From the sequence record NC_070956.1: a stretch of 64,000 nt of DNA. The stretch is one strand, 5' to 3'. Shown here piece by piece: positions 7,201 through 33,023 of this stretch (its first letter is position 1; every line of letters begins with the position of its first letter). Position numbers and translations under genes: made by a program. Under the pieces are notes generated by a model. That model saw only the letters and a program-made list of their open reading frames with translations, ran no database searches and had not been told where the DNA came from.

Positions 7201-7821
7201 ATGCGTTTTATTATTGCTTTTCTTACACTGGTTCTCTCCACTGGCTCCTATGCTTTCAGCTTCGGTAAGAAGGCCGTTCCGGTAGAAGAGAACAGCTTCG
7301 AAACATCTTGGGCTCGTATCCTCACTCTCAAAGATCAAATCTCTATGGGATGGACTGCTCGGGACATGAGTGACCGGGAATTCGGTATTACCATGACGTG
7401 CGACAGTATCCGCTCGACCATCTGGAATTACAAGTTCCCGGGTCAACCTGGTGTGAAGGTAGACGGTCTTGCCATGGTAATGGTTCGTGACGTCGGAAAC
7501 GATTTGTCGAAGATCGACCTGGAGACCGAAAGCCGGAACTACATGGTGATCTTTGATAGTAACTATGCAATCGACGGTTCTGCGAATCTGGAAGTGCTGG
7601 TGAAAGACTCCAAGCGCATCGATGTGATTCCTGAACACATCAAGTTCCTGTGGGTTGGTTATAAAGCTAACCATACTGGTACCTGGATTGTTGCATCTGG
7701 ACCCAAGATGACCGCTGAAGGTATGTTCGGTCGTATGCAGTCTTACGCTGACTTCCCTCGTACCCAATTGGACACTTGCAGTCGTTCCATGGAGGAGCCT
7801 TCTTATAAGGTAGCCAACTAA
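7201..7821 (+). CDS. putative exported protein
   Basis: signal peptide MRFIIAFLTLVLSTGSYA; AAGGA RBS. Confidence 0.78.
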   Translation: MRFIIAFLTLVLSTGSYAFSFGKKAVPVEENSFETSWARILTLKDQISMGWTARDMSDREFGITMTCDSIRSTIWNYKFPGQPGVKVDGLAMVMVRDVGNDLSKIDLETESRNYMVIFDSNYAIDGSANLEVLVKDSKRIDVIPEHIKFLWVGYKANHTGTWIVASGPKMTAEGMFGRMQSYADFPRTQLDTCSRSMEEPSYKVAN

Positions 7822-23100: not shown

Positions 23101-23478
23101 AATGATGACTTGGTCATCGCCTGGCTACTGACATTCTGGTTCATTAAGTTGGGGTACAACAAATCTCTTTATGGAATACCTGCTGGTCAAACACTCATAC
23201 AGTTGACGACCTTGGTTAATGATCCTGACAAGGAAGGGTTCACCAAAGATCAACTTGAGTTGTTTATTAGAATCAAGGATCGAATTGAAGAACTCAGTAA
23301 AGAACTTGAGGATACTGATAACGATATCATAGCCAGACGGATAGAACTTGAGATTCGTAAGTTGGGTGAATATATCCCACGAGAACTCAGGAAAACCATC
23401 ACGATTGATGAAATTCTTTCTAACGCTAGTAAAGAACGAAACAAACGTGGTCTGGATAAACGATTCGGACGAGTATAA
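20137..23478 (+). CDS. terL: terminase large subunit, intein-containing
   Basis: Walker A MPRQSGK|T split by an intein; Walker B LLYDE; nuclease motifs GMDTSD and DDLVIAW. Confidence 0.93.
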   Translation: MSDEKLGIAKQVMSHLGIEPEQLPEYMFDDKTKRTPLTNLDERVLSHYDEESLWTMKTVRFLKDFSRFNAGVHLETNNATFLRTAELFRNMGIKNYYFLLQINNPLLKDVNPWDPDLTDEQKLMVLQEAQENVWYIVRELIKIDGRRFRANRAVISFIWSCLNHLPTLILMPRQSGKDQDGETEVLRPDGKWTKIKDLKVGDEVLARDGTIANITGFYPQGEQVSYEIEFIDGRKTKAGSEHLWTMWDPKKKGWVVRDTEHIKERLDKNEEGLSIPLPLEDRVTKNKDYVLHPYIQGVLFTAGDKSGLTFKTEKNDVVARVKKLLTRGWIVTSDGDQHTISMRADYDPTVHRNVKQAMRDFGIADVSPKDRAVPKEIMEGSHHDRKMFIRGIMDVDGHIERGGSVYYASAGEKPSETVQRLFWSIGAICKVTKRGYKVNGDEPGERITRYSYRLRVRYTEPGELFLVDDRSLLVSTRAVQYNSKLSFKSITKEKKLKQSYCIELDHPENLYITDNWIVTHNTVGMQVMAFIMQYLIGRGFKAGLITLAASNRMQFVNAMKKIRAGLPEYLVNVTYKDNDAGNILTYQAYGAENKNTFEVRVPSGGEDGAENVSRGSTFEMLLYDEPAWMKYIENIMNGAGPSTLTAQKNAREKGIPYFTAKATTPNSILKEEGKYMYGEMKKATEWRENFFDSYSESHLLQRVTKASPVSTTQPHICMQFNHLQLGFGKDWVKETMDKLSLSWSKAKIDLLMMWTEEGKNKVFDDKVREQLANVKQEPLWNEEIANTGLFIDWYYSNERLNEFFTDPTEFFLMGMDTSDAVDRDACTLIIRRMKTGENIGIGRYPRAFLDDVTTVLREMIVRIENSLLIIERNRAVDMIDKLLLTLPALDIDPFKRIFNDVYQDPVKFRNEWKDVQEVHFKYRTKEFYLKYKERFGFRTGPSTRRQMYDFLHEAVNSTGAGLRHPMLADELIGLETDNDGRIDHSRKGNDDLVIAWLLTFWFIKLGYNKSLYGIPAGQTLIQLTTLVNDPDKEGFTKDQLELFIRIKDRIEELSKELEDTDNDIIARRIELEIRKLGEYIPRELRKTITIDEILSNASKERNKRGLDKRFGRV
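20668..21699 (+). mobile_element. intein (344 aa) with LAGLIDADG homing-endonuclease domain; class-3-type W/C/T signature
   Basis: inserted after GK of Walker A; block B SEHLW, block E FIRGIMDVDG, block F SYCIEL, C-terminal VTHN followed by Thr+1. Confidence 0.9.
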
Positions 23479-23484
23479 ACATAA

Positions 23485-23518
23485 GACCCCTACCCCATCC
23501 TTTCGGAGGGGTAGGGGT
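23485..23518 (+). terminator. intrinsic terminator after terL
   Basis: ACCCCTACCCC...GGGGTAGGGGT hairpin followed by TTT. Confidence 0.75.
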
Positions 23519-23535
23519 TTATGCACTTCATTTTA

Positions 23536-23562
23536 TTTCAAACCGATATTACTTAGTTGATA
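23536..23562 (+). promoter_or_regulatory. putative phage early promoter
   Basis: TTTCAAACCGATATTACTTAGTTGATA. Confidence 0.55.
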
Positions 23563-23628
23563 AGCCAAGTCGGTTTATCGCCAGTTGTAACAGCAACTGG
23601 CATCACTCTTCAACTTTAGGAGTACTAC

Positions 23629-23772
23629 ATGTACACTACGATCAAACTTAAACCTCAAAACGGCGGCCAGAAATCCGCTGAAGAGAGGCGTAACGAGATG
23701 AGGCAATACGCTCAATCTCAATTTCCAGGAATGGTTGTAACCAAAGCGTACACACCCAGTCCTTCTGCATAA
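23629..23772 (+). CDS. small hypothetical protein (47 aa; not in ORF track)
   Basis: TTAGGAG RBS; MYTTIKLKPQNGGQKSAEERRNEMRQYAQSQFPGMVVTKAYTPSPSA; own promoter and terminator. Confidence 0.65.
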   Translation: MYTTIKLKPQNGGQKSAEERRNEMRQYAQSQFPGMVVTKAYTPSPSA

Positions 23773-23795
23773 TATAACTATTATGCGTAAATAAA

Positions 23796-23822
23796 TACCC
23801 ACCTCCAATGGAGGTGGGTATT
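23796..23822. terminator. bidirectional terminator
   Basis: ATACCCACCTCC-AAT-GGAGGTGGGTAT. Confidence 0.8.
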
Positions 23823-23841
23823 ACAACCAGATCTATTTTTT

Positions 23842-24534
23842 TTATGCAAAATACATTGCGGCTTTTGCTTGTTTCTGCATGTCGGTCATTTTGTTCCGTT
23901 TCTTGGTGATTGCGCATTTGGAACTCTTCTGGAGTTTCAGAATAGTTTCAACGTTGTGCTGATCTTCGGAAAGGATATGGACGACCGTGTCGGATGTTTC
24001 TTCGAGATACTTGAGTGCTTTCTTGTACTTGGTGCGATAGCTCTCGAATACGGCTTTATCCAGGAACATGCGGTCCTTGGCATCAACTGGTCGACCACTG
24101 GCTTCTACATCGTTGAAACGTTTCACGAACGTCTCGTGAGTGATATCAACGAAGAAGATAATGTCGGGGTTGATGTTGTACCCGTAGGTTTGCAGCAGGC
24201 GACGGTTGTATTCCAGTACTTCTACCATGCTCACAACGTCATCGGATTGATACACCATGGAAGACACCACGTTGCGATCAGAGATGACATCACGGCTATG
24301 GGAAAGGTACGGATGGATGACCTGCTTAAAAGCTTCAACACGAGCTACTGCGTAACCCTGGATCTCTTCATCCTTGGTCAGCGTGTTGGATACCAGCTTT
24401 TCTTTCAGTGCTTTGAAGGACGGAGAACCGGTAAAGGGTTCCATCACTTGTTTGGCTTTGGTGTGCTTGGCGTGCGCATTTGCCAGTGTGGATTTACCTG
24501 CGAAATCCAGACCTTCATAGACTATGTAACTCAC
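23842..24534 (-). CDS. tmk: thymidylate (dTMP) kinase
   Basis: P-loop YEGLDFAGKST; ISDRNVVSSMVYQ motif. Confidence 0.9.
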   Translation of the reverse strand: MSYIVYEGLDFAGKSTLANAHAKHTKAKQVMEPFTGSPSFKALKEKLVSNTLTKDEEIQGYAVARVEAFKQVIHPYLSHSRDVISDRNVVSSMVYQSDDVVSMVEVLEYNRRLLQTYGYNINPDIIFFVDITHETFVKRFNDVEASGRPVDAKDRMFLDKAVFESYRTKYKKALKYLEETSDTVVHILSEDQHNVETILKLQKSSKCAITKKRNKMTDMQKQAKAAMYFA

Positions 24535-26893: not shown

Positions 26894-26996
26894 GTTAAAC
26901 CCTCTTGTCATTAGCTGAATACAAAAGATCGTTAAACGGCATAAACCCACTACCCCAACTAAGGAGGTAGTGAGTTCATAATATTTGACCTTACGA

Positions 26997-27455
26997 TTAC
27001 GAGAAGTCTCGGATTTCTTCCCATGCTTTACCGTACTTATTCAGTACGTAGTTGATGTAGAAAACACCGAAGAGGAAAGTGAGTATGGGGTTCACCTTGA
27101 CCTCGCCTTCGCCACCTGCTTTACCCAGGTTCAGTATAGCCCGGCGGGCACTGAATGCAAAGATAATCATGGCGATGCAGTACATCAGGGATACGACCAT
27201 CCCAAGGACCATCATGATCCTGGAGAACTCATCGGCATCGCCGAGACCGGTCATCCAGGTAGAGATCCCATAGAGCGCTGCTGTGGTGTACAGGAACGCG
27301 CCTGAGAGCACTCGTTCATTACTCTGCTCACTTACGTGAGACTGGAGCTTGTACGCCCACATGAGGTTGTACGCACCCAGGGAGACGACAGAGAGAAAGA
27401 CCATCAACCAGGTGCTGATCTTCATACGGGTTTGGATCATAGAAATCATGAACAT
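26997..27455 (-). CDS. integral membrane protein (DUF4234-like)
   Basis: four hydrophobic helices; YNLMWAYKL and LFGVFYINY motifs. Confidence 0.65.
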   Translation of the reverse strand: MFMISMIQTRMKISTWLMVFLSVVSLGAYNLMWAYKLQSHVSEQSNERVLSGAFLYTTAALYGISTWMTGLGDADEFSRIMMVLGMVVSLMYCIAMIIFAFSARRAILNLGKAGGEGEVKVNPILTFLFGVFYINYVLNKYGKAWEEIRDFS

Positions 27456-27522
27456 TTCATTTCCTTAAAAGTTAGTAAGTTGCAATATATTAACCTTTGG
27501 GTAATTTTTAATAGAACATAAT

Positions 27523-27558
27523 AAAAGCCTCTACTCTCCGGTTAGGGAGAGTAGAGGC
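27523..27558 (-). terminator. intrinsic terminator of the minus-strand RNA locus
   Basis: 13-bp stem GCCTCTACTCTCC/GGAGAGTAGAGGC with a U-tract on the minus strand. Confidence 0.82.
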
Positions 27559-27559
27559 G

Positions 27560-28330
27560 ATTACTGACGTGTACTACCTTCCCATTACTCACTCACTTCC
27601 CGATTATAGATCCGGCCAAAGACCTTATCGGGATCAAGAGAGTAATAGGCTGATAGCAAGTACGTGAGGGGTTCCAAACGGAAACCGTCACTTCTACCAA
27701 CTTCCATGCAGAGCAAGCATGGCGGACCGTTCGACTTCGTTATTAAGGTGCTCTCTGAAGTATAGTTCCCTCAGCTACCCGCCGCGGCCTCAGCCGGGGG
27801 TTTTTGCTAAGGGCATCAGCCTTATATAACGTCGTCACTGTATTGGCACTAACGAATAGAACCATCGGCGCACGGTTAAGGTACCTAAGTGACTCGCGTC
27901 CGTTGGGACGGGAGATATGACTTCCTTATAAAGGAAGAAAGGGTTTTGAACCCAGGATGCCCTGATCCATTGTAATAGACCATCGCTTCACTCCTTTCAT
28001 TAGAACCTTGCATGCCTTTCCGGCCAAAATGGTTCATCAGAGTTACTGTATATGGGAACTGTTCCGTGGGTTCAAAAAGGTATCCCGGACAATGACTAAG
28101 TAACCACACTCCACCCCATCAGCGCAAGCTAATGTAAGGTACGTCATCATCCAGGGAATAGGGCCGAGAACACGCTGTCTTTTAGAAGGATCGCTTTTGA
28201 GTGGTAAGTTCACTCATCTACTGCCAACCGACTTCCCCGTAGGGCTTCGTCTTAACTAACGTGTCTCGGTGATTCGTACTAGTATCTATCTGGTATGTTT
28301 GACACCTTGGGTATCATGGCAAACAGCCTA
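27560..28330 (-). ncRNA. candidate large structured ncRNA (~770-850 nt; possibly GOLLD/ROOL-like or a new class)
   Basis: no credible ORF; dense local and long-range helices; downstream of tRNAs; ends at a terminator; 5' end uncertain. Confidence 0.65.
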
Positions 28331-28424
28331 GGATTAACCTATGTACAAATATAGTTGAGAGTGTAAGTAAGAAACACGGTAACAGGAGGCGGAGAAACCG
28401 TATGAATACACTTACACCCTCAAA

Positions 28425-28503
28425 GGGTGAGAACTCCTGGAATCGAACCAGGGCAATCCCGCGATGGGTTGTGCGGGCGACTTTCCTTTCGTCTTCAGTT
28501 CTC
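28425..28503 (-). ncRNA. tRNA-like element / pseudo-tRNA
   Basis: 7-bp acceptor stem GAGAACT/AGTTCTC, D-loop with GG, T-arm CCTGG-TTCGATT-CCAGG; but 10-nt anticodon loop and ACCC rather than NCCA end. Confidence 0.7.
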
Positions 28504-28505
28504 GT

Positions 28506-28769
28506 TTACAGTTCGATGTCGAAAGACATCACTTCTTGTTCTTCGGTCAACTTGGTGTTAAGATCGTCAAAGCCACCAACGTGTTCATCATCCAGGAAGA
28601 TCTGGGGAACTGTTGTGACTTGTCGACCACACAATTGACTGAGTTGTGTTGTGTCGATTCCGGAAGACTTGATATCGATATATTCGAACGCGATACCTTT
28701 ATCTTCGAGAAGCTCTTTTGCCTTTACACAGTAAGGGCAATTATCCTTTCCATAAACTTTGGCTTTCAT
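28506..28769 (-). CDS. grx: glutaredoxin
   Basis: CPYC active site, TVPQIF and GGFDDL motifs. Confidence 0.93.
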   Translation of the reverse strand: MKAKVYGKDNCPYCVKAKELLEDKGIAFEYIDIKSSGIDTTQLSQLCGRQVTTVPQIFLDDEHVGGFDDLNTKLTEEQEVMSFDIEL

Positions 28770-28792
28770 GGTGTTTCTCTACGGACTTAAAA

Positions 28793-28868
28793 TGGCAGGC
28801 AAGCAAGGATTCGAACCTTGGACATCTGGTTTTGGAGACCAGCGCTCTACCAACTGAGCTACTCACCT
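28793..28868 (-). tRNA. trnW: tRNA-Trp(CCA)
   Basis: 76-nt cloverleaf, anticodon loop CT-CCA-AA, encoded CCA end. Confidence 0.95.
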
Positions 28869-29055
28869 GTAATACGAATTCACATTACTACACACTCGCC
28901 GTTCTTCCTAGTTTCCGTTCCGAACGTTCCACGGTTCACCGTCACCATATACTTTATCCATTCGGACACCATCTGTGGCTATCAAGTACTTAGGTCCATA
29001 TTGGTTATGTCTGTTGACACCCGTGTGTAAACCAGATTAATCTGGGGTGAAAATA

Positions 29056-29132
29056 TGGCAGGGATAACGGGGCTCGAACCCGCGACCTCCGGCGTGACAG
29101 GCCGGCACTCTAACCATCTGAGCTACATCCCT
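29056..29132 (-). tRNA. trnD: tRNA-Asp(GTC)
   Basis: cloverleaf, loop CT-GTC-AC, GCCA end. Confidence 0.95.
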
Positions 29133-29136
29133 AAAT

Positions 29137-29212
29137 TGGCGGTTCCTGCTGGACTTGAACCAGCGACATATGCATTAACAGTGCACCGTTCTACCTACTG
29201 AACTAAGGAACC
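29137..29212 (-). tRNA. trnN: tRNA-Asn(GTT)
   Basis: cloverleaf, loop CT-GTT-AA, GCCA end. Confidence 0.95.
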
Positions 29213-29218
29213 TGAATA

Positions 29219-29294
<76 letters not shown>

Positions 29295-29327
29295 GATGTC
29301 GTACCAAGGGTACGACGTACTGGACTT

Positions 29328-29528
29328 TCAACCAGCATTAAAAGAACCTAAGATCAAACCACGGACATTGCCTATGGTTCGACCAATCAAAGTGACTTCG
29401 ATGCGATCAATGGGCAAATAACCATTCGCCAGATCAATCGCTTCCGATAAGTCGACAGCTGCGATAACCACCGCGTCGTACTCGTCATAGTCCCAATCAT
29501 CGGTTCTTTCAACTTTATAGATGTTCAT
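29328..29528 (-). CDS. small hypothetical protein (66 aa)
   Basis: MNIYKVERTDDWDYDEYDAVVIAA...; GGAG RBS; similar to the product of 54663-54926. Confidence 0.7.
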   Translation of the reverse strand: MNIYKVERTDDWDYDEYDAVVIAAVDLSEAIDLANGYLPIDRIEVTLIGRTIGNVRGLILGSFNAG

Positions 29529-29598
29529 ATCGACAGTCTCCGTTGTTAGCGATTTGGCCTTCCAACGTACTACCAGCAATATCGAACATCTTGCATAA

Positions 29599-29743
29599 CA
29601 ATGAGTTTCCCAGAGTTTGACATTTTCTATCCATCATGGTCCCCGAGACCGGATTTCGGGACGCGCCGATGCTACTTCGATTCTAGACCGAAGTGTAATG
29701 GTGTTTTTTACTATTCGGGGGTTTCTGTCAAACCACTTCATTG
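29599..29743 (-). ncRNA. structured small RNA, unit 1 of a tandem pair
   Basis: CAATGAAGT...CTGGGAAACTCATTG ends; inner stem GTTTGACA/TGTCAAAC; two internal hairpins. Confidence 0.7.
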
Positions 29744-29752
29744 TTTATTTAT

Positions 29753-29891
29753 CAATGAGTTTCCCAGGGTGTAGAGTATTTTATCCGCTGCGGGCAGGCC
29801 AGGTGGGTCTTCGGGGCGCACCCACAGTTGGCTCAAGAGAGCTGCCTTGTGTTTTGGCGACTGGCCTTTATTTCTCTACACTACTTCATTG
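29753..29891 (-). ncRNA. structured small RNA, unit 2 of a tandem pair
   Basis: same conserved ends; inner stem GTGTAGAG/CTCTACAC is compensatory relative to unit 1. Confidence 0.7.
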
Positions 29892-30628
29892 AAAGGTGTT
29901 AGCTGTTTCTCTCTTGGAGCCCAGCATCGTCACCAGGATAAAACCTTTGTGTGACAACACTCAATTAACACCTATATCATTGTGACACCTTCTCGGTGTG
30001 ATACATAGTCGATCACCGCATTGGTTAGATCCCTGATGGACGACTGGACGCTGCGTATAGCAGTGTTTGTCTCCTAGGTGGGTATCGCCAGCACCGTGTC
30101 GGCTATAGGATGTGATCACACGAGGAAACCAGAGGGATGTCCAACCCTTTTCAGTTACATGTGATCACGAAAGCTGTTGTTAACAAAGTATAATAACTTG
30201 TTGTTACTAAATACTTTTCAATTGGCTCTCTTTGAAAGCTAATAGAAAAGAGGTCTTCACAAACCGTATGGAAGACCTTTGAAAAATGTAAAGGATTAAC
30301 AATGAAAAATAAACCAACCATACACGAAAGCCAACACCAATGACCTTCTATATAAACTCTCATTAAAGAGCATATATAGAAAGGGGGTAGGAAGACTACC
30401 CCGCGGGTAAAAGCAATAACCCAAGAACGTGCAGATATTGAAAGCGGGAGCTTTCTTGATAATGACTCTTGGGTGAATCAGTATTAAGAAAGCAAGGGAT
30501 AAAGCTGCGCACAAAATCCCTTTGCTTGTATTACGTAGGAGTTTATTCAATGGCTTCGTTTTGACCACTGTCGCGTTCAGTAATCAAAAGGAAGCATTTT
30601 TGTACATATAATAACAGACACCCATAAC

Positions 30629-30654
30629 TTTTCAGGTAGATATTATCTACATGA
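30629..30654 (+). promoter_or_regulatory. putative early promoter with palindrome
   Basis: TTTTCAGGTAGATATTATCTACATGA; GTAGATA-T-TATCTAC palindrome at the divergence point of the RNA locus and the early array. Confidence 0.55.
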
Positions 30655-30744
30655 GAAACCCGTTGGTATCTTAATTGTATGGTACAACTGTGTGGGATTT
30701 CCTACACTATATGATTACCTCTATCATCATAAGGAAACAGAGTT

Positions 30745-31452
30745 ATGACTTTGGCTCGTGCTTTTATCGAACGTATTATCGTTCAGATCATTCTCGCCTT
30801 CATGGCGGCAAACTGGCGGAAGATGAACGAACACATCGTCATCGCCCGCGCTGCTGGTATCTCCCAAGGGATCAAAACCAAGTACCTGGGCGACTGGGGT
30901 CCGATCAGTGTCTGGCTGTCTCTCGATGGCCGGGCGTGGTCCATTTGCATCGGTACCGCGACCAACTTTATTACTTCCCGACTCACCAACGGTAACTGGG
31001 CGTTCAACCGCTCGGTAGTGGAGAACCTTTACAACCAATTTGAAGAGCGGCGTACCGAACCTCAGTTCGCTGACCTCGATACACTCCGACTCTCTATCGA
31101 TTCGTTGCTTCTGGAACTTCCGATCGTTGCCAAGCTGGGTGATCGTATCATGGGTAATACAGTCCGGGTTCTTCCCCAGCTCAACATGTCTGGCGAGTAC
31201 GCCAGGGAATTGTCGAAGTTGATCACTGTGGTATTCAATGGTAAAGTCGGTCTCCGCGGCAAGCCCTCTGGGACAATGGGCCTGGGTATCAGCCGTCTCG
31301 AACTGGGTGACGGCGTAGTCACCGGCTCAATGGTCCACCACTTCCGTGACTACTCCATGCCCTGGGAAGGGAATGCAGTGAACCGTGCTGAGGCACGTGA
31401 CGCTCTGGTCGAGGCGTTTGTGCACGCTATGACCAAACCTGAACTGAAGTAA
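30745..31452 (+). CDS. hypothetical protein
   Basis: 235 aa, AAGGA RBS, hairpin terminator at 31460-31483. Confidence 0.8.
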   Translation: MTLARAFIERIIVQIILAFMAANWRKMNEHIVIARAAGISQGIKTKYLGDWGPISVWLSLDGRAWSICIGTATNFITSRLTNGNWAFNRSVVENLYNQFEERRTEPQFADLDTLRLSIDSLLLELPIVAKLGDRIMGNTVRVLPQLNMSGEYARELSKLITVVFNGKVGLRGKPSGTMGLGISRLELGDGVVTGSMVHHFRDYSMPWEGNAVNRAEARDALVEAFVHAMTKPELK

Positions 31453-31509
31453 TCGTAACGGGGAGATCCTTCGGGGTCTCTCCGTTTATGTTTGTTAAGG
31501 GGGATATTG

Positions 31510-32220
31510 ATGACTAAAAACTATACTGAAGAACAGAAGCTCAGAACTTTGGAACTCGCCGAATTACTCAATTTTGTCCAGCTTGATAATGGCGAGCTTT
31601 TCAAAGCGATGTTCGATAACATAGTGAATGGAGGGACTAAAGAGTCGCTCATCATTAATGATTTCGTGATCAAGATGACTCGTGATAAAGGGATCTGGTT
31701 CACCTTGATTAATACTGGTGCTCGTCTGGGTGACCGGTGTATTGGTAAAACCGAAACTCTTTTTCATGTGGAGTTCAAGGATGGTAACTTGATTCCTGAT
31801 TATCTCAGACGTGTCAGGAAGATACTCAGGGCGACATATTCCTATGTCTATCGTGAGGCTTACAGCGATGCAATGGAAGAGATTCGGAAAATGAAATCTC
31901 GTCCTACCATCAGTCAACGCTTCAGACTGGCTTGGTTAAAAGCAGCACCTATTGATGTAATCTACGCCAAAGGTTATCTCAAAAAGTTGCTGAAGTTTTA
32001 CGTCTGTTACTCAATGGTCGAAAACATGGGTAAGCGTTCTATCCCCGCGATAACTGTGTCGAAACCACGTCCAGAACACTGGGACGAAAACATTTTCGGT
32101 ATTGCGGGTTTTAATCAACCCGGTAATGTACTGACGGATAAGGGTGATCCTAATAAGGGTACCAAACCGTCACCTTTAACTTTGATGGTGAGGTTGTTCG
32201 ATTCTCACTACGGATTTTAA
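31510..32220 (+). CDS. hypothetical protein
   Basis: ~236-aa ORF, AAGGGG RBS. Confidence 0.75.
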   Translation: MTKNYTEEQKLRTLELAELLNFVQLDNGELFKAMFDNIVNGGTKESLIINDFVIKMTRDKGIWFTLINTGARLGDRCIGKTETLFHVEFKDGNLIPDYLRRVRKILRATYSYVYREAYSDAMEEIRKMKSRPTISQRFRLAWLKAAPIDVIYAKGYLKKLLKFYVCYSMVENMGKRSIPAITVSKPRPEHWDENIFGIAGFNQPGNVLTDKGDPNKGTKPSPLTLMVRLFDSHYGF

Positions 32221-32237
32221 CGCAAGAGGAAATAACA

Positions 32238-33023
32238 ATGGAAACTCTGAACCATAAAGCACTCATTTGGGAACCCAATTTCAATACCTACTGTTTGGGA
32301 AGCGTCGATGTTTCTCATACTTACTACGAAGATGTGCTCATTGCGGCATTTGTTCGTCATGTACGTAAAGACATCCAGGGTTACAACAAACATATCACCG
32401 ATCTTCTCAAGTCGCTCAATCAACCTAAGGGTGGGTTGGGGATCACCATCTTTGGTGACGATCGGAACTATTTCTCGATCCATCGGGATCGGGTTAATCG
32501 TTTCACGCTGGTCTTCAAGGATAGTTACTTCGAGGAAACCTTCTGGAGACTGGGTAGTAAGGCGGAACTCTTTAATGAAGAGATCCTGGACACCATTCTC
32601 GCTGACAGGGAGATCAATCTCTTTGAACTTCTGGCGTCGACTAAGGCGTTGTTGACAGCTCGGAACTTCTCTGAAGGTTTCGATCAACTCAAACGCCCTA
32701 AGTGGTACAAACGTCTCAAAGGTGATGTGATCACTCATGAGCTTGAGGGGGCTTCTTGTGGCGGACTCTTCAAGGTAGTGGTGCGTCAGGTCCATCCACT
32801 GTTGGATGACACCCAGAACGTTATCGAAGTTCACATGAAGCATGACGTCTTCACGGCTTCGACAGATCTCATCAAGGGAGGTAATGCCCGTTACACTTCT
32901 TCTCCTATTCTTGGTGAACTCACTGAAGAGATTCTCAACCAGACCATAGCTAGGATTCAAGCACCGATGTTGGTGGGAACTCCTTTCTTGCCAGGTCTGG
33001 CTGCTGACTTTTATTACGATTAA
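32238..33023 (+). CDS. hypothetical protein
   Basis: 261 aa, GAGGA RBS, GGGGTC-TTCG-GACCCC terminator. Confidence 0.78.
   Translation: METLNHKALIWEPNFNTYCLGSVDVSHTYYEDVLIAAFVRHVRKDIQGYNKHITDLLKSLNQPKGGLGITIFGDDRNYFSIHRDRVNRFTLVFKDSYFEETFWRLGSKAELFNEEILDTILADREINLFELLASTKALLTARNFSEGFDQLKRPKWYKRLKGDVITHELEGASCGGLFKVVVRQVHPLLDDTQNVIEVHMKHDVFTASTDLIKGGNARYTSSPILGELTEEILNQTIARIQAPMLVGTPFLPGLAADFYYD

Follow-up and report, generated by a model that had tools for sequence, protein, structure and literature searches.

What is encoded by the gap that separates the transfer RNA (tRNA) cluster from the virion genes in Aeromonas phage LAh10? The window, as we call the whole 64,000-nucleotide (nt) stretch analysed here, comes from record MK838116 (window coordinates are record coordinates minus 186000) and belongs to a phage of the genus Ludhianavirus, assigned by NCBI taxonomy to the Chimalliviridae, jumbo phages that form a nucleus, just as an earlier note on this DNA had supposed. 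That note proposed that the minus strand downstream of the tRNA cluster specifies a large and ornately structured non-coding RNA, and covariation among homologues now supports this proposal, over a conserved extent of ~830 nt (~28345 to 27520, minus strand) that slightly widens the original coordinates. The RNA has a two-module fold, with long-range helices and at least one pseudoknot, kept by compensatory substitutions, and its 5′ module proves replaceable, judging from the unrelated version with a hammerhead motif carried by OBP-like phages. It is very likely that the region specifies a functional structured RNA of some kind; that 28345–27520 is, more specifically, the gene for a large, stable, trans-acting RNA of a previously undescribed family is the reading we favour, with rather less assurance. 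The family is so far confined to one clade, the Ludhianavirus, OBP/Petsuvirus-like and PS1/Ferozepurvirus-like jumbo phages. Few large structured RNAs are known to have tertiary pairings backed by covariation; the familiar ones from bacteria and phages are GOLLD, ROOL, OLE and raiA, whose functions are unknown.

Homologues and synteny of the LAh10 element

Among 50,697 phage records, a 'distant' blastn search matched the LAh10 element in Ludhianavirus phages D3, D6 and D9 only, at 99–100% identity; within the RNA just 11 positions vary among the four genomes, which is too few for covariation and comparable to the rate in the flanking genes. More diverged elements of the LAh10 type were reached through homologues of the virion protein (72–85% identity) in Logan and ENA assemblies, yielding metagenome contigs L050, L051, L052, L053/54, L056/57 and L058, homologous to the LAh10 element over its full length at ~60–82% identity, so that this type comprises seven lineages including LAh10. 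Other routes were unproductive: the DUF4234 protein had no relatives anywhere searched, the glutaredoxin picked up unrelated phages, in IMG/VR the single virion protein had no match and, of 120 loci picked up with a loose two-gap DNA pattern, 119 matched by chance, and protein-alignment scans found OBP-like and distant loci and no LAh10-type element.

The surrounding order is the same in every relative examined: tRNAs, glutaredoxin, a gap of 0.77–1.35 kilobases (kb) poor in open reading frames (ORFs), then the DUF7484 virion gene. Such a gap precedes the virion gene in OBP, SXP01, Kc263, N1M2, Survivor, AH04 and pEt-SU, and the gap sequences of this OBP type, for which we assembled 13 lineages, are mutually homologous (60–76% identity). 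Nine GenBank phages from eight host genera carry the OBP-type RNA, which their records leave unannotated. Neither nhmmer nor blastn found similarity between the LAh10 element and the OBP-type elements beyond the terminators.

Covariation was assessed with RNAalifold and pair counts against 500 shuffles and a slid-partner control; the shuffles are uncorrected for phylogeny, and the slid-partner control, which keeps the relatedness of the sequences, gives values far lower than those observed. Because MAFFT misplaced the variable inserts when the whole 3′ domain was aligned, we used concatenated mini-constructs of conserved segments joined by N spacers, which leave those inserts out.

A pseudoknotted core conserved across the clade

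The 3′ module (~27886–27571, ~320 nt) opens with hairpin S1 (27866–27886), whose 13-nt loop ACCUUAACCGUGC (27882–27870) is nearly invariant and whose five stem pairs all show compensatory changes across 15 lineages. Further downstream lies the core (27697–27731), made of AACGGUCCGC (27731–27722), hairpin P-b, CCAUGC-UUGCUCU-GCAUGG (27722–27704), and GAAGUUGG (27704–27697); P-b is the CCATGC/GCATGG hairpin pointed out in the earlier note, and five of its six pairs are compensatory. Pairing between ACGGU in the core and ACCGU in the S1 loop creates a pseudoknot of five pairs, in which 100% of cells pair. Its single variable pair is C-G in nine lineages, U-A in five and A-U in one, a count that includes the PS1-like (Ferozepurvirus-like) locus; it is broken in none, and the position changes in step on both sides independently within the LAh10 type and the OBP type. 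This covariation is the strongest single evidence for a specific tertiary fold. Helix P-c (27648–27700) joins UUGGU (27700–27696) to AUCAG (27654–27650) around an inserted irregular hairpin and is followed by an invariant CAGCC; 98.7% of its cells pair, and its fourth pair changes from G-U in the LAh10 type to U-A in the OBP type.

A closing helix (27581–27649) between CCUAUUACUC (27649–27640) and GAGUAAUGGG (27590–27581), of which the ATTACTC/GAGTAAT pairing noticed earlier forms part, has compensatory changes in 6 of 10 pairs and is 95.7% paired (0/500 shuffles). Inside it lie UCCCGAU/AUCGGGA and a hairpin whose conserved loop is UUUGGCCG (27624–27609) and whose stem covaries by eye (GGUC/GAUC, GUC/GAC, UCCC/GGGA, CGUC/GGCG). 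The string UUUGGCCGG occurs twice in the LAh10 RNA, at 27609–27624 and 28015–28031 on the minus strand; of the two, the 3′ copy forms the conserved hairpin loop, closed by a stem that covaries in LAh10, L050, L051 and L052. We speculate that the palindromic GGCC of the UUUGGCCG loop, at 27619–27616, is a candidate for a loop-loop contact, within one RNA or between copies.

The motifs of this module recur, in the same order, in the ~300-nt 3′ extension of the long OBP-type RNAs (OBP, Kc263, N1M2, AH04, L020, L021, L059, L061 and L135): a hairpin with the 13-nt loop (A/G)CC(U/C)UAAC(C/U)GUG(A/C); 90–155 nt downstream of it, AAAC(G/A)GUCCGC; and then a hairpin, GAAGUUG(G/U), a variable hairpin and (U/A)CAGCC. 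Profile searches missed the shared core, which was recognised from its motifs and then tested in the 15-lineage mini-construct alignment. The structure so tested, comprising the S1 stem, the ACCGU/ACGGU pseudoknot, P-b and the helix UUGN/NCAG, is 96.7% paired with 13 of 21 pairs compensatory, a result reached by 0/500 shuffles and set against slid controls of 29–47%. The 3′ module is thus the conserved core of a family that spans at least three groups of genera.

PS1/pAEv1810-like loci (L013 6575–6760 and L023 1170–1345) carry the module in a third and more diverged form, with the loop GCCCUAACAGUGA, the partner AAACUGUAUGC, GAAGUGG in place of GAAGUUG and A-U as the variable pseudoknot pair. 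The 5′ part of these loci is unlike both the LAh10 and the OBP types, and in pAEv1810 an HNH endonuclease gene follows the 3′ module on the other strand.

The 5′ module of the LAh10-type RNA

Five of the helices listed in the earlier note are confirmed by compensatory changes, with 92–97% of cells pairing per test and 0/500 shuffles: the 16-base-pair (bp) CCGAGAC/GUUCUCGG stem, the AACUUAC hairpin and the 11-bp long-range helix of the 5′ module, together with the AUUACUC/GAGUAAU closing helix and the CCAUGC hairpin described above. Stem P1 (28164–28269) pairs CCGAGACACGUUAGUU (28269–28254) with AGACAGCGUGUUCUCGG (28180–28164) in the seven lineages; it runs from CCGAGACAC at its outer 5′ end to GUGUUCUCGG, and the two strands that first drew attention to it, CCGAGACAC (28269–28261) and GTGTTCTCGG (28173–28164), can be read directly in the sequence. 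Eight of its 16 pairs are compensatory and 96% of cells pair. Enclosed by P1 are variable hairpins and the hairpin GAGUG-AACUUAC-CACUC (28215–28199), earlier seen as TGAGTG/CACTCA, with compensatory changes in five of six pairs and an invariant loop. Stem and hairpin together are 94.7% paired, with 14 of 30 pairs compensatory (0/500 shuffles, slid controls 36–50%).

The long-range helix P-L (27944–28077) pairs UUUUGAACCCA (28077–28067) with UGGGUUCAAAA (27954–27944). In the DNA it appears as the inverted repeat TTTTGAACCCA/TGGGTTCAAAA at 27944–27954 and 28067–28077, 11 nt long, 100% complementary and 112 nt apart; a repeat scan recovered it, along with TCCCGAT/ATCGGGA, CTTCCTT/AAGGAAG and the ATTACTC/GAGTAAT arm, so that these repeats of the earlier note are all present. 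Across the seven lineages 8 of 10 P-L pairs are compensatory and 92.9% paired (0/500 shuffles; 92% for the whole structure tested with it), the variants being UUUUGAACCCA/UGGGUUCAAAA in LAh10, UUGGAUCUC/GAGAUCCGA in L050 and UUGGGUCUUUUC/GAAAAGACCCAA in L053. The ~110-nt insert that P-L encloses varies between lineages and is not conserved, and the CCC-TACG-GGG and CTTCCTT/AAGGAAG hairpins of the earlier note turn out to be lineage-specific inserts, likewise not conserved. Two 8-bp pairings that we also considered, AGGCUGAU/AUCAGCCU and AGGGCAUC/GAUGCCCU, are not conserved among homologues and were set aside as chance or lineage-specific.

The note had further suggested that CATTGT/ACAATG crosses the long helix as a pseudoknot. 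That particular pairing (CAUUGU/ACAAUG) is absent from L052; tentatively, a crossing pairing probably does exist, between CUGAU (28121–28117, just before GGGGUGGAGUGUGG) and AUCAG (27966–27962, inside P-L), within 27959–28125. Its putative variants, aligned by eye with register shifts between lineages, are CUGAU/AUCAG in LAh10, CCAGU/GCUGG in L050, CUUGAU/GUCAAG in L052 and GCGAUAU/AUAACGC in L053. At the junction of the 5′ and 3′ modules stands the hairpin CUCCCGUCC-CAA-CGGACGCGAG (27893–27914, minus strand), with counterparts at the same position in L052 (CUCCCUC..GAGCGAG) and L053 (CUCCC..GGGAG).

A hammerhead at the module junction of OBP-type RNAs

The 5′ module of OBP-like phages is unrelated in sequence to that of the LAh10 type, and at the position of the LAh10 junction hairpin (27914–27893) these RNAs carry a type I hammerhead, found in all 13 OBP-type lineages: L011 (OBP, 7595–7672), L012, L014–L018, L020, L021, L055 and L059–L061. 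It reads [stem I] CUGA(C/U/A)GAG UC..GA CGAAAC GGG...CCGUC [stem I′], laid out as CUGANGAG, stem II, CGAAAC, stem III, CCGUC and an open stem I. The catalytic core and stem III are invariant in the 13 lineages, all four stem I pairs are compensatory (ACAU/AUGU, CUAU/AUAG, CACC/GGUG), and covariation extends to a tertiary pseudoknot of 5–6 bp, in which the loop of stem II pairs with sequence lying 5′ of stem I (for example CAUCG/CGAUG, CCCG/CGGG, CGUCG/CGACG). In OBP the Rfam model Hammerhead_1 (RF00163) aligns to the same core at a sub-threshold 16.6 bits against a cut-off of 34; the low score arises because stems II and III carry loops of 20–40 nt, and for this reason standard annotation misses the motif. 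In the long forms cleavage is predicted 7–10 nt before the 3′ module's first hairpin, and in the short forms (SXP01, Survivor and pEt-SU) shortly before the terminator. Between 27400 and 31600 LAh10 has two CUGANGA..GAAA strings, neither with the required stems, and no hammerhead core.

Coding potential, folding and strand

A coding function is one alternative, namely that the region encodes one or more small proteins, such as the 40-residue hypothetical protein annotated in D3, D6 and D9 (D3_0006) at window 27585–27707, inside the candidate RNA, or a 56-residue ORF at 28046–28213. The latter has a marginal PHROG match (E=0.018) and 46% identity over 41 residues to a frame in L052. We find, as the earlier note had claimed, no supported ORF on the minus strand of 27520–28345. 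The longest ORFs within 27456–28505 encode 74 (from a GTG start) and 56 amino acids, and neither has Pfam or PHROG support, their best E values of 0.018 and 0.054 falling far short of the cut-offs; the LAh10 record has no coding sequence here, nor anywhere from 213455 to 217510 (window 27455–31510). The ORFs are not conserved across lineages, and translated similarity among homologous elements is limited to short stretches spread over both strands and every one of the six frames, as expected from DNA similarity and not from a conserved ORF. The annotated 40-residue ORF moreover overlaps covarying helices of the 3′ module. We consider a protein-coding role very improbable.

Alternatively, the region might be a pseudogene, or what is left of a mobile element such as an intron or homing-endonuclease cassette, decaying at a tRNA-cluster hot spot and showing helices by chance. 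HNH endonuclease genes do lie in or next to the gap in pAEv1810, L052 and L056, and the neighbouring tRNA cluster is a hot spot of insertions and deletions among LAh10, D3, D6 and D9. Against this, extensive compensatory substitutions maintain many helices and the pseudoknot, and unpaired loops are strongly conserved across genera. The pseudogene version was rejected when six-frame pieces of the RNA region gave no protein remnant or similarity at the loci of relatives, and at E≤10 there was no match to group I or group II introns (RF00028, RF00029) in LAh10. Decay is thus a scarcely credible account of the region.

The region also folds more stably than shuffled sequence, chiefly on the minus strand. 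Folded over 881 nt, the minus strand gives z=−5.4 and the plus strand −2.5 (20 shuffles each), and in 240-nt windows mean z is −3.2 on the minus and −0.8 on the plus strand, with a background across the window of −1.4 ± 1.6. Two other spots of the window fold even better than the candidate RNA. Folding energy alone is moderate, suggestive evidence; covariation among homologues is decisive. Invariant G-U pairs, and switches between G-U and Watson-Crick pairs, are compatible with a minus-strand transcript only, and the folding asymmetry favours the same strand.

One of the two other spots, at 30080–30800, is AT-rich (GC content 0.36–0.40), folds far below shuffles on both strands (z down to −8.5) and lies inside the ~4-kb LAh10 region without annotated coding sequence (27455–31510). 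The only repeat found in it is a 15-nt imperfect inverted repeat at 30346–30381, and it may be a divergent promoter, an origin-like region or another RNA. The other, intergenic at 23360–23960 between helicase/terminase-like and dTMP kinase genes, reaches z values of −5 to −7.6 on either strand and contains a perfect inverted repeat of 14 nt (23794–23822) as well as terminator-like matches near 23477–23524.

Genomic context, ends of the RNA and a possible leader role

The gene order of LAh10 is the same as in D3, D6 and D9, with all features that follow on the minus strand. Four tRNAs (29294–28793), called by ARAGORN and by Rfam 15 at gathering thresholds, are followed by a glutaredoxin-like ORF (28769–28506), a tRNA-like element (28426–28503) and the candidate RNA; beyond the terminator of the RNA come, in LAh10, the DUF4234 gene (27455–26997) and the DUF7484 virion structural gene (26950–26045). 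The RNA lies directly downstream of a tRNA island, as it does in the relatives, and adjoins virion and terminase genes. The four tRNAs and the glutaredoxin-like ORF (28506–29294) are annotated in D3, D6 and D9 and unannotated in the LAh10 record. Among these four genomes insertions and deletions concentrate at 29000–29500 and 32000–32500, with 416 and 294 differing alignment columns against 0–14 per 250 nt elsewhere; the first of these hot spots lies in the tRNA cluster, whose tRNA content differs and where D9 annotates a 142-nt 'tRNA-OTHER'.

The tRNA-like element directly upstream of the RNA (28503–28426) has a 7-bp acceptor stem, a T arm CCUGG-UUCGAUU-CCAGG, a CCCGC/GCGGG anticodon-like stem and an anticodon-like loop of 10 nt (ACAACCCAUC), against 7 nt in a tRNA cloverleaf; the 10-nt length is kept in L051 and L052. 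ARAGORN does not call it, and it has no match to the Rfam tRNA model (RF00005) at E≤10. It aligns with L053 3970–4046, which ARAGORN calls tRNA-Ile(GAU) and which scores below the Rfam tRNA cut-off (23.6 against 29 bits), and its stems covary in the alignment (CCCGC/GCGGG, CCAGC/GCUGG, CCCAC/GUGGG, CCCGA/UCGGG). The element directly precedes the RNA in six of the seven LAh10-type lineages, and in N1M2 the OBP-type RNA directly abuts a real tRNA-Met; this placement suggests that tRNA-processing enzymes free the 5′ end of the RNA.

At the start of the conserved RNA lies the motif UAUAUUUGUACAUAGG (28338–28353, minus strand), in which TTTGTAC or TTGTGC is kept among the aligned homologues. It resembles the 11-mer GATCTTTTGTA, which is conserved between the RNA terminator and the virion structural gene in all relatives and occurs exactly in the window at 26930–26920 and 52457–52447 (both minus strand) and nowhere else, where by our own estimate ~0.03 occurrences would be expected. 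GATCTTTTGTA is likely a promoter element of this phage clade, and the TTTGTAC motif at 28353–28338 may by its resemblance be an internal promoter.

The earlier note placed a 13-bp minus-strand terminator at the end of the region, and a terminator scan found it at 27558–27527: GCCUCUACUCUCC-CUAACC-GGAGAGUAGAGGC followed by UUUUAUU (27520–27558), a stem of 13 pairs, eight of them G-C, with a 6-nt loop and a T run, kept with compensatory changes among homologues. We picture the RNA as being transcribed as the tail of a unit that would comprise the tRNA cluster, glutaredoxin and tRNA-like element, or alternatively from a start at the TTTGTAC motif (28353–28338). Its 5′ end could be freed by tRNA-type processing at 28503–28426 and its 3′ end would be set by the terminator at 27558–27527. 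In OBP-like phages the predicted hammerhead would then part the 5′ from the 3′ module, a separation that argues for the 3′ module being able to function as an independent RNA, and in LAh10, without the ribozyme, the modules might stay joined or be separated by a host RNase.

The terminator also invites a different explanation, in which the 3′ module is part of a cis-acting leader or attenuator, riboswitch-like, that senses something and governs the terminator at 27558–27527 and thereby read-through into downstream (late) genes, DUF4234 in LAh10 and the virion structural operon in relatives. The 3′ module indeed abuts a strong terminator in every lineage, just upstream of the virion gene or DUF4234, and the purine tail GGGAAG..AGUG after the closing helix resembles the terminator 3′ arm and could by eye pair with its 5′ arm as a possible anti-terminator, for example GAGAGUG/CACUCUC in L053. 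This pairing is weak, however, in LAh10 and L052; in all lineages the promoter-like GATCTTTTGTA stands between terminator and virion gene, LAh10 has a different downstream gene, and the short OBP-type RNAs lack the module yet keep the terminator. In addition, 800 nt is far above known leader sizes, and the hammerhead of the relatives points to a released RNA and not to a leader. We accordingly regard attenuation as unlikely and retain a separate, trans-acting RNA as the preferred interpretation.

Weight of the evidence and possible function

Several observations weigh against a trans-acting RNA family with a common core. The LAh10-type lineages are few (n=7), nhmmer finds no similarity between the LAh10-type and OBP-type 5′ modules, and the variable inserts align unreliably, which leaves perhaps half of the 830 nt outside the tested structure. 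The short OBP-type RNAs (SXP01, Survivor, pEt-SU) retain the terminator but not the 3′ module, which is thus dispensable in some phages, and deletion of the tRNA-like element in L050 means that this element is not essential for maturation. Ideas on function draw on analogy of size, context and layout.

With that caution, we tentatively suggest, as the likeliest function but one to which we give less than even weight, that the RNA might resemble GOLLD and ROOL in forming a self-contained, possibly multimeric particle, one that would be made alongside the phage tRNAs and would bind or enclose a component of the translation or tRNA machinery during infection. A bolder proposal, which we hold to be doubtful, would make it the first of a new kind of giant ornate RNA, peculiar to jumbo phages that form a nucleus, GOLLD-like in build with an exchangeable 5′ and a conserved pseudoknotted 3′ module, the latter hammerhead-released in some lineages, acting as an RNA-only multimer or a ribonucleoprotein on tRNAs, ribosomes or RNA traffic between phage nucleus and cytoplasm.

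A new class would add a large RNA to the well-studied and experimentally tractable Chimalliviridae. Its conserved 3′ core, swapped 5′ parts and the junction hammerhead of the relatives make function testable, and the hammerhead, exactly at the module junction, defines a natural processed product. One may now ask whether the released 3′ module is the active species, whether the RNA multimerises like GOLLD and ROOL, and whether it is retained in the phage nucleus or exported with the tRNAs. For annotation, ~1 kb has been wrongly left blank, or given spurious small ORFs, in at least a dozen GenBank phages.

Comparison with known structured RNAs

No such RNA figures in a 2023 catalogue of phage structured RNAs (PMC10690425), nor does a 2025 review on the biology of nucleus-forming phages refer to any non-coding RNA (PMC12908238). 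Searched against Rfam 15 at gathering thresholds, the window gave the four tRNAs only. At E≤10, with permissive filters and stretches of 1.0–1.5 kb, three diverged members (LAh10, OBP and L053) matched no GOLLD, ROOL or OLE model, and LAh10 27300–28800 matched no GOLLD, ROOL, OLE, intron, ribozyme or riboswitch. Of the two options left by the earlier note, a relative of GOLLD, ROOL or OLE thus loses ground and a new class is favoured, the covarying fold matching no Rfam 15 family.

OLE (RF01071), whose model found no match in LAh10, belongs to extremophilic or anaerobic Firmicutes and has Oap partner proteins, whereas the RNA described here comes from a lytic jumbo phage of Aeromonas. The likeness to the hammerhead family (RF00163) is limited to the syntenic RNAs of OBP-like phages, LAh10 having no such core. 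T4 species 1 and 2 (RNA C and D) are stable non-tRNA RNAs of a tRNA cluster, co-transcribed and matured with the tRNAs and of unknown function; they share with our RNA a place within or at the end of a phage tRNA cluster, but measure ~120–140 nt against ~830 nt with a pseudoknotted core. The phi29 packaging RNA (pRNA, ~174 nt) acts in trans as a multimer held by loop-loop pairing. It too is a structured phage RNA, and the virion and terminase neighbours and the conserved loop with its GGCC palindrome recall it here; its sequence is unrelated, and adjacency is the sole link of the LAh10 RNA to packaging.

ROOL (RF03087) is, like the LAh10 RNA, a large phage-associated RNA that occurs close to tRNA islands; it contains several pseudoknots and has no known protein partner (PMC12286853). 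It differs in lacking a conserved-3′/variable-5′ split, and its model had no match in the window, eight loci, OBP or L053.

The closest resemblance is to GOLLD, which is encoded by phages and prophages beside tRNA islands and has many helices and pseudoknots and an unknown function (PMC12286853). Could the LAh10 RNA simply be a highly diverged GOLLD, or ROOL, beyond the reach of narrow Rfam models? It belongs to the same size class, holds the same position beside phage tRNA islands and has the same conserved 3′ and variable 5′ division, and the N1M2 RNA directly follows tRNA-Met as GOLLD env-38 does (PMC12286853). On the other hand, GOLLD (RF01998) and ROOL give no match at the gathering threshold in eight loci and the window, nor at E≤10 in the three diverged members; we judge common membership quite improbable and, on the failed covariance-model membership, rate a new class above a GOLLD variant. 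The new RNA differs from GOLLD in lying outside its covariance model at E≤10, in its hosts, which are Gram-negative, and jumbo Chimalliviridae setting, and in a 5′ region swapped between two unrelated versions, one with a hammerhead. Both GOLLD and ROOL assemble into cages made solely of RNA, which might bind to ribosomes or have tRNAs inside (PMC12286853); the 14-mer RNA-only nanocage is a feature of GOLLD. With GOLLD it shares a length above 800 nt (~830 nt), a tRNA-island neighbourhood, sometimes directly after a tRNA, and a conserved 3′ part joined to a variable 5′ part (PMC12286853), the 3′ core extending here over 15 lineages in three groups.

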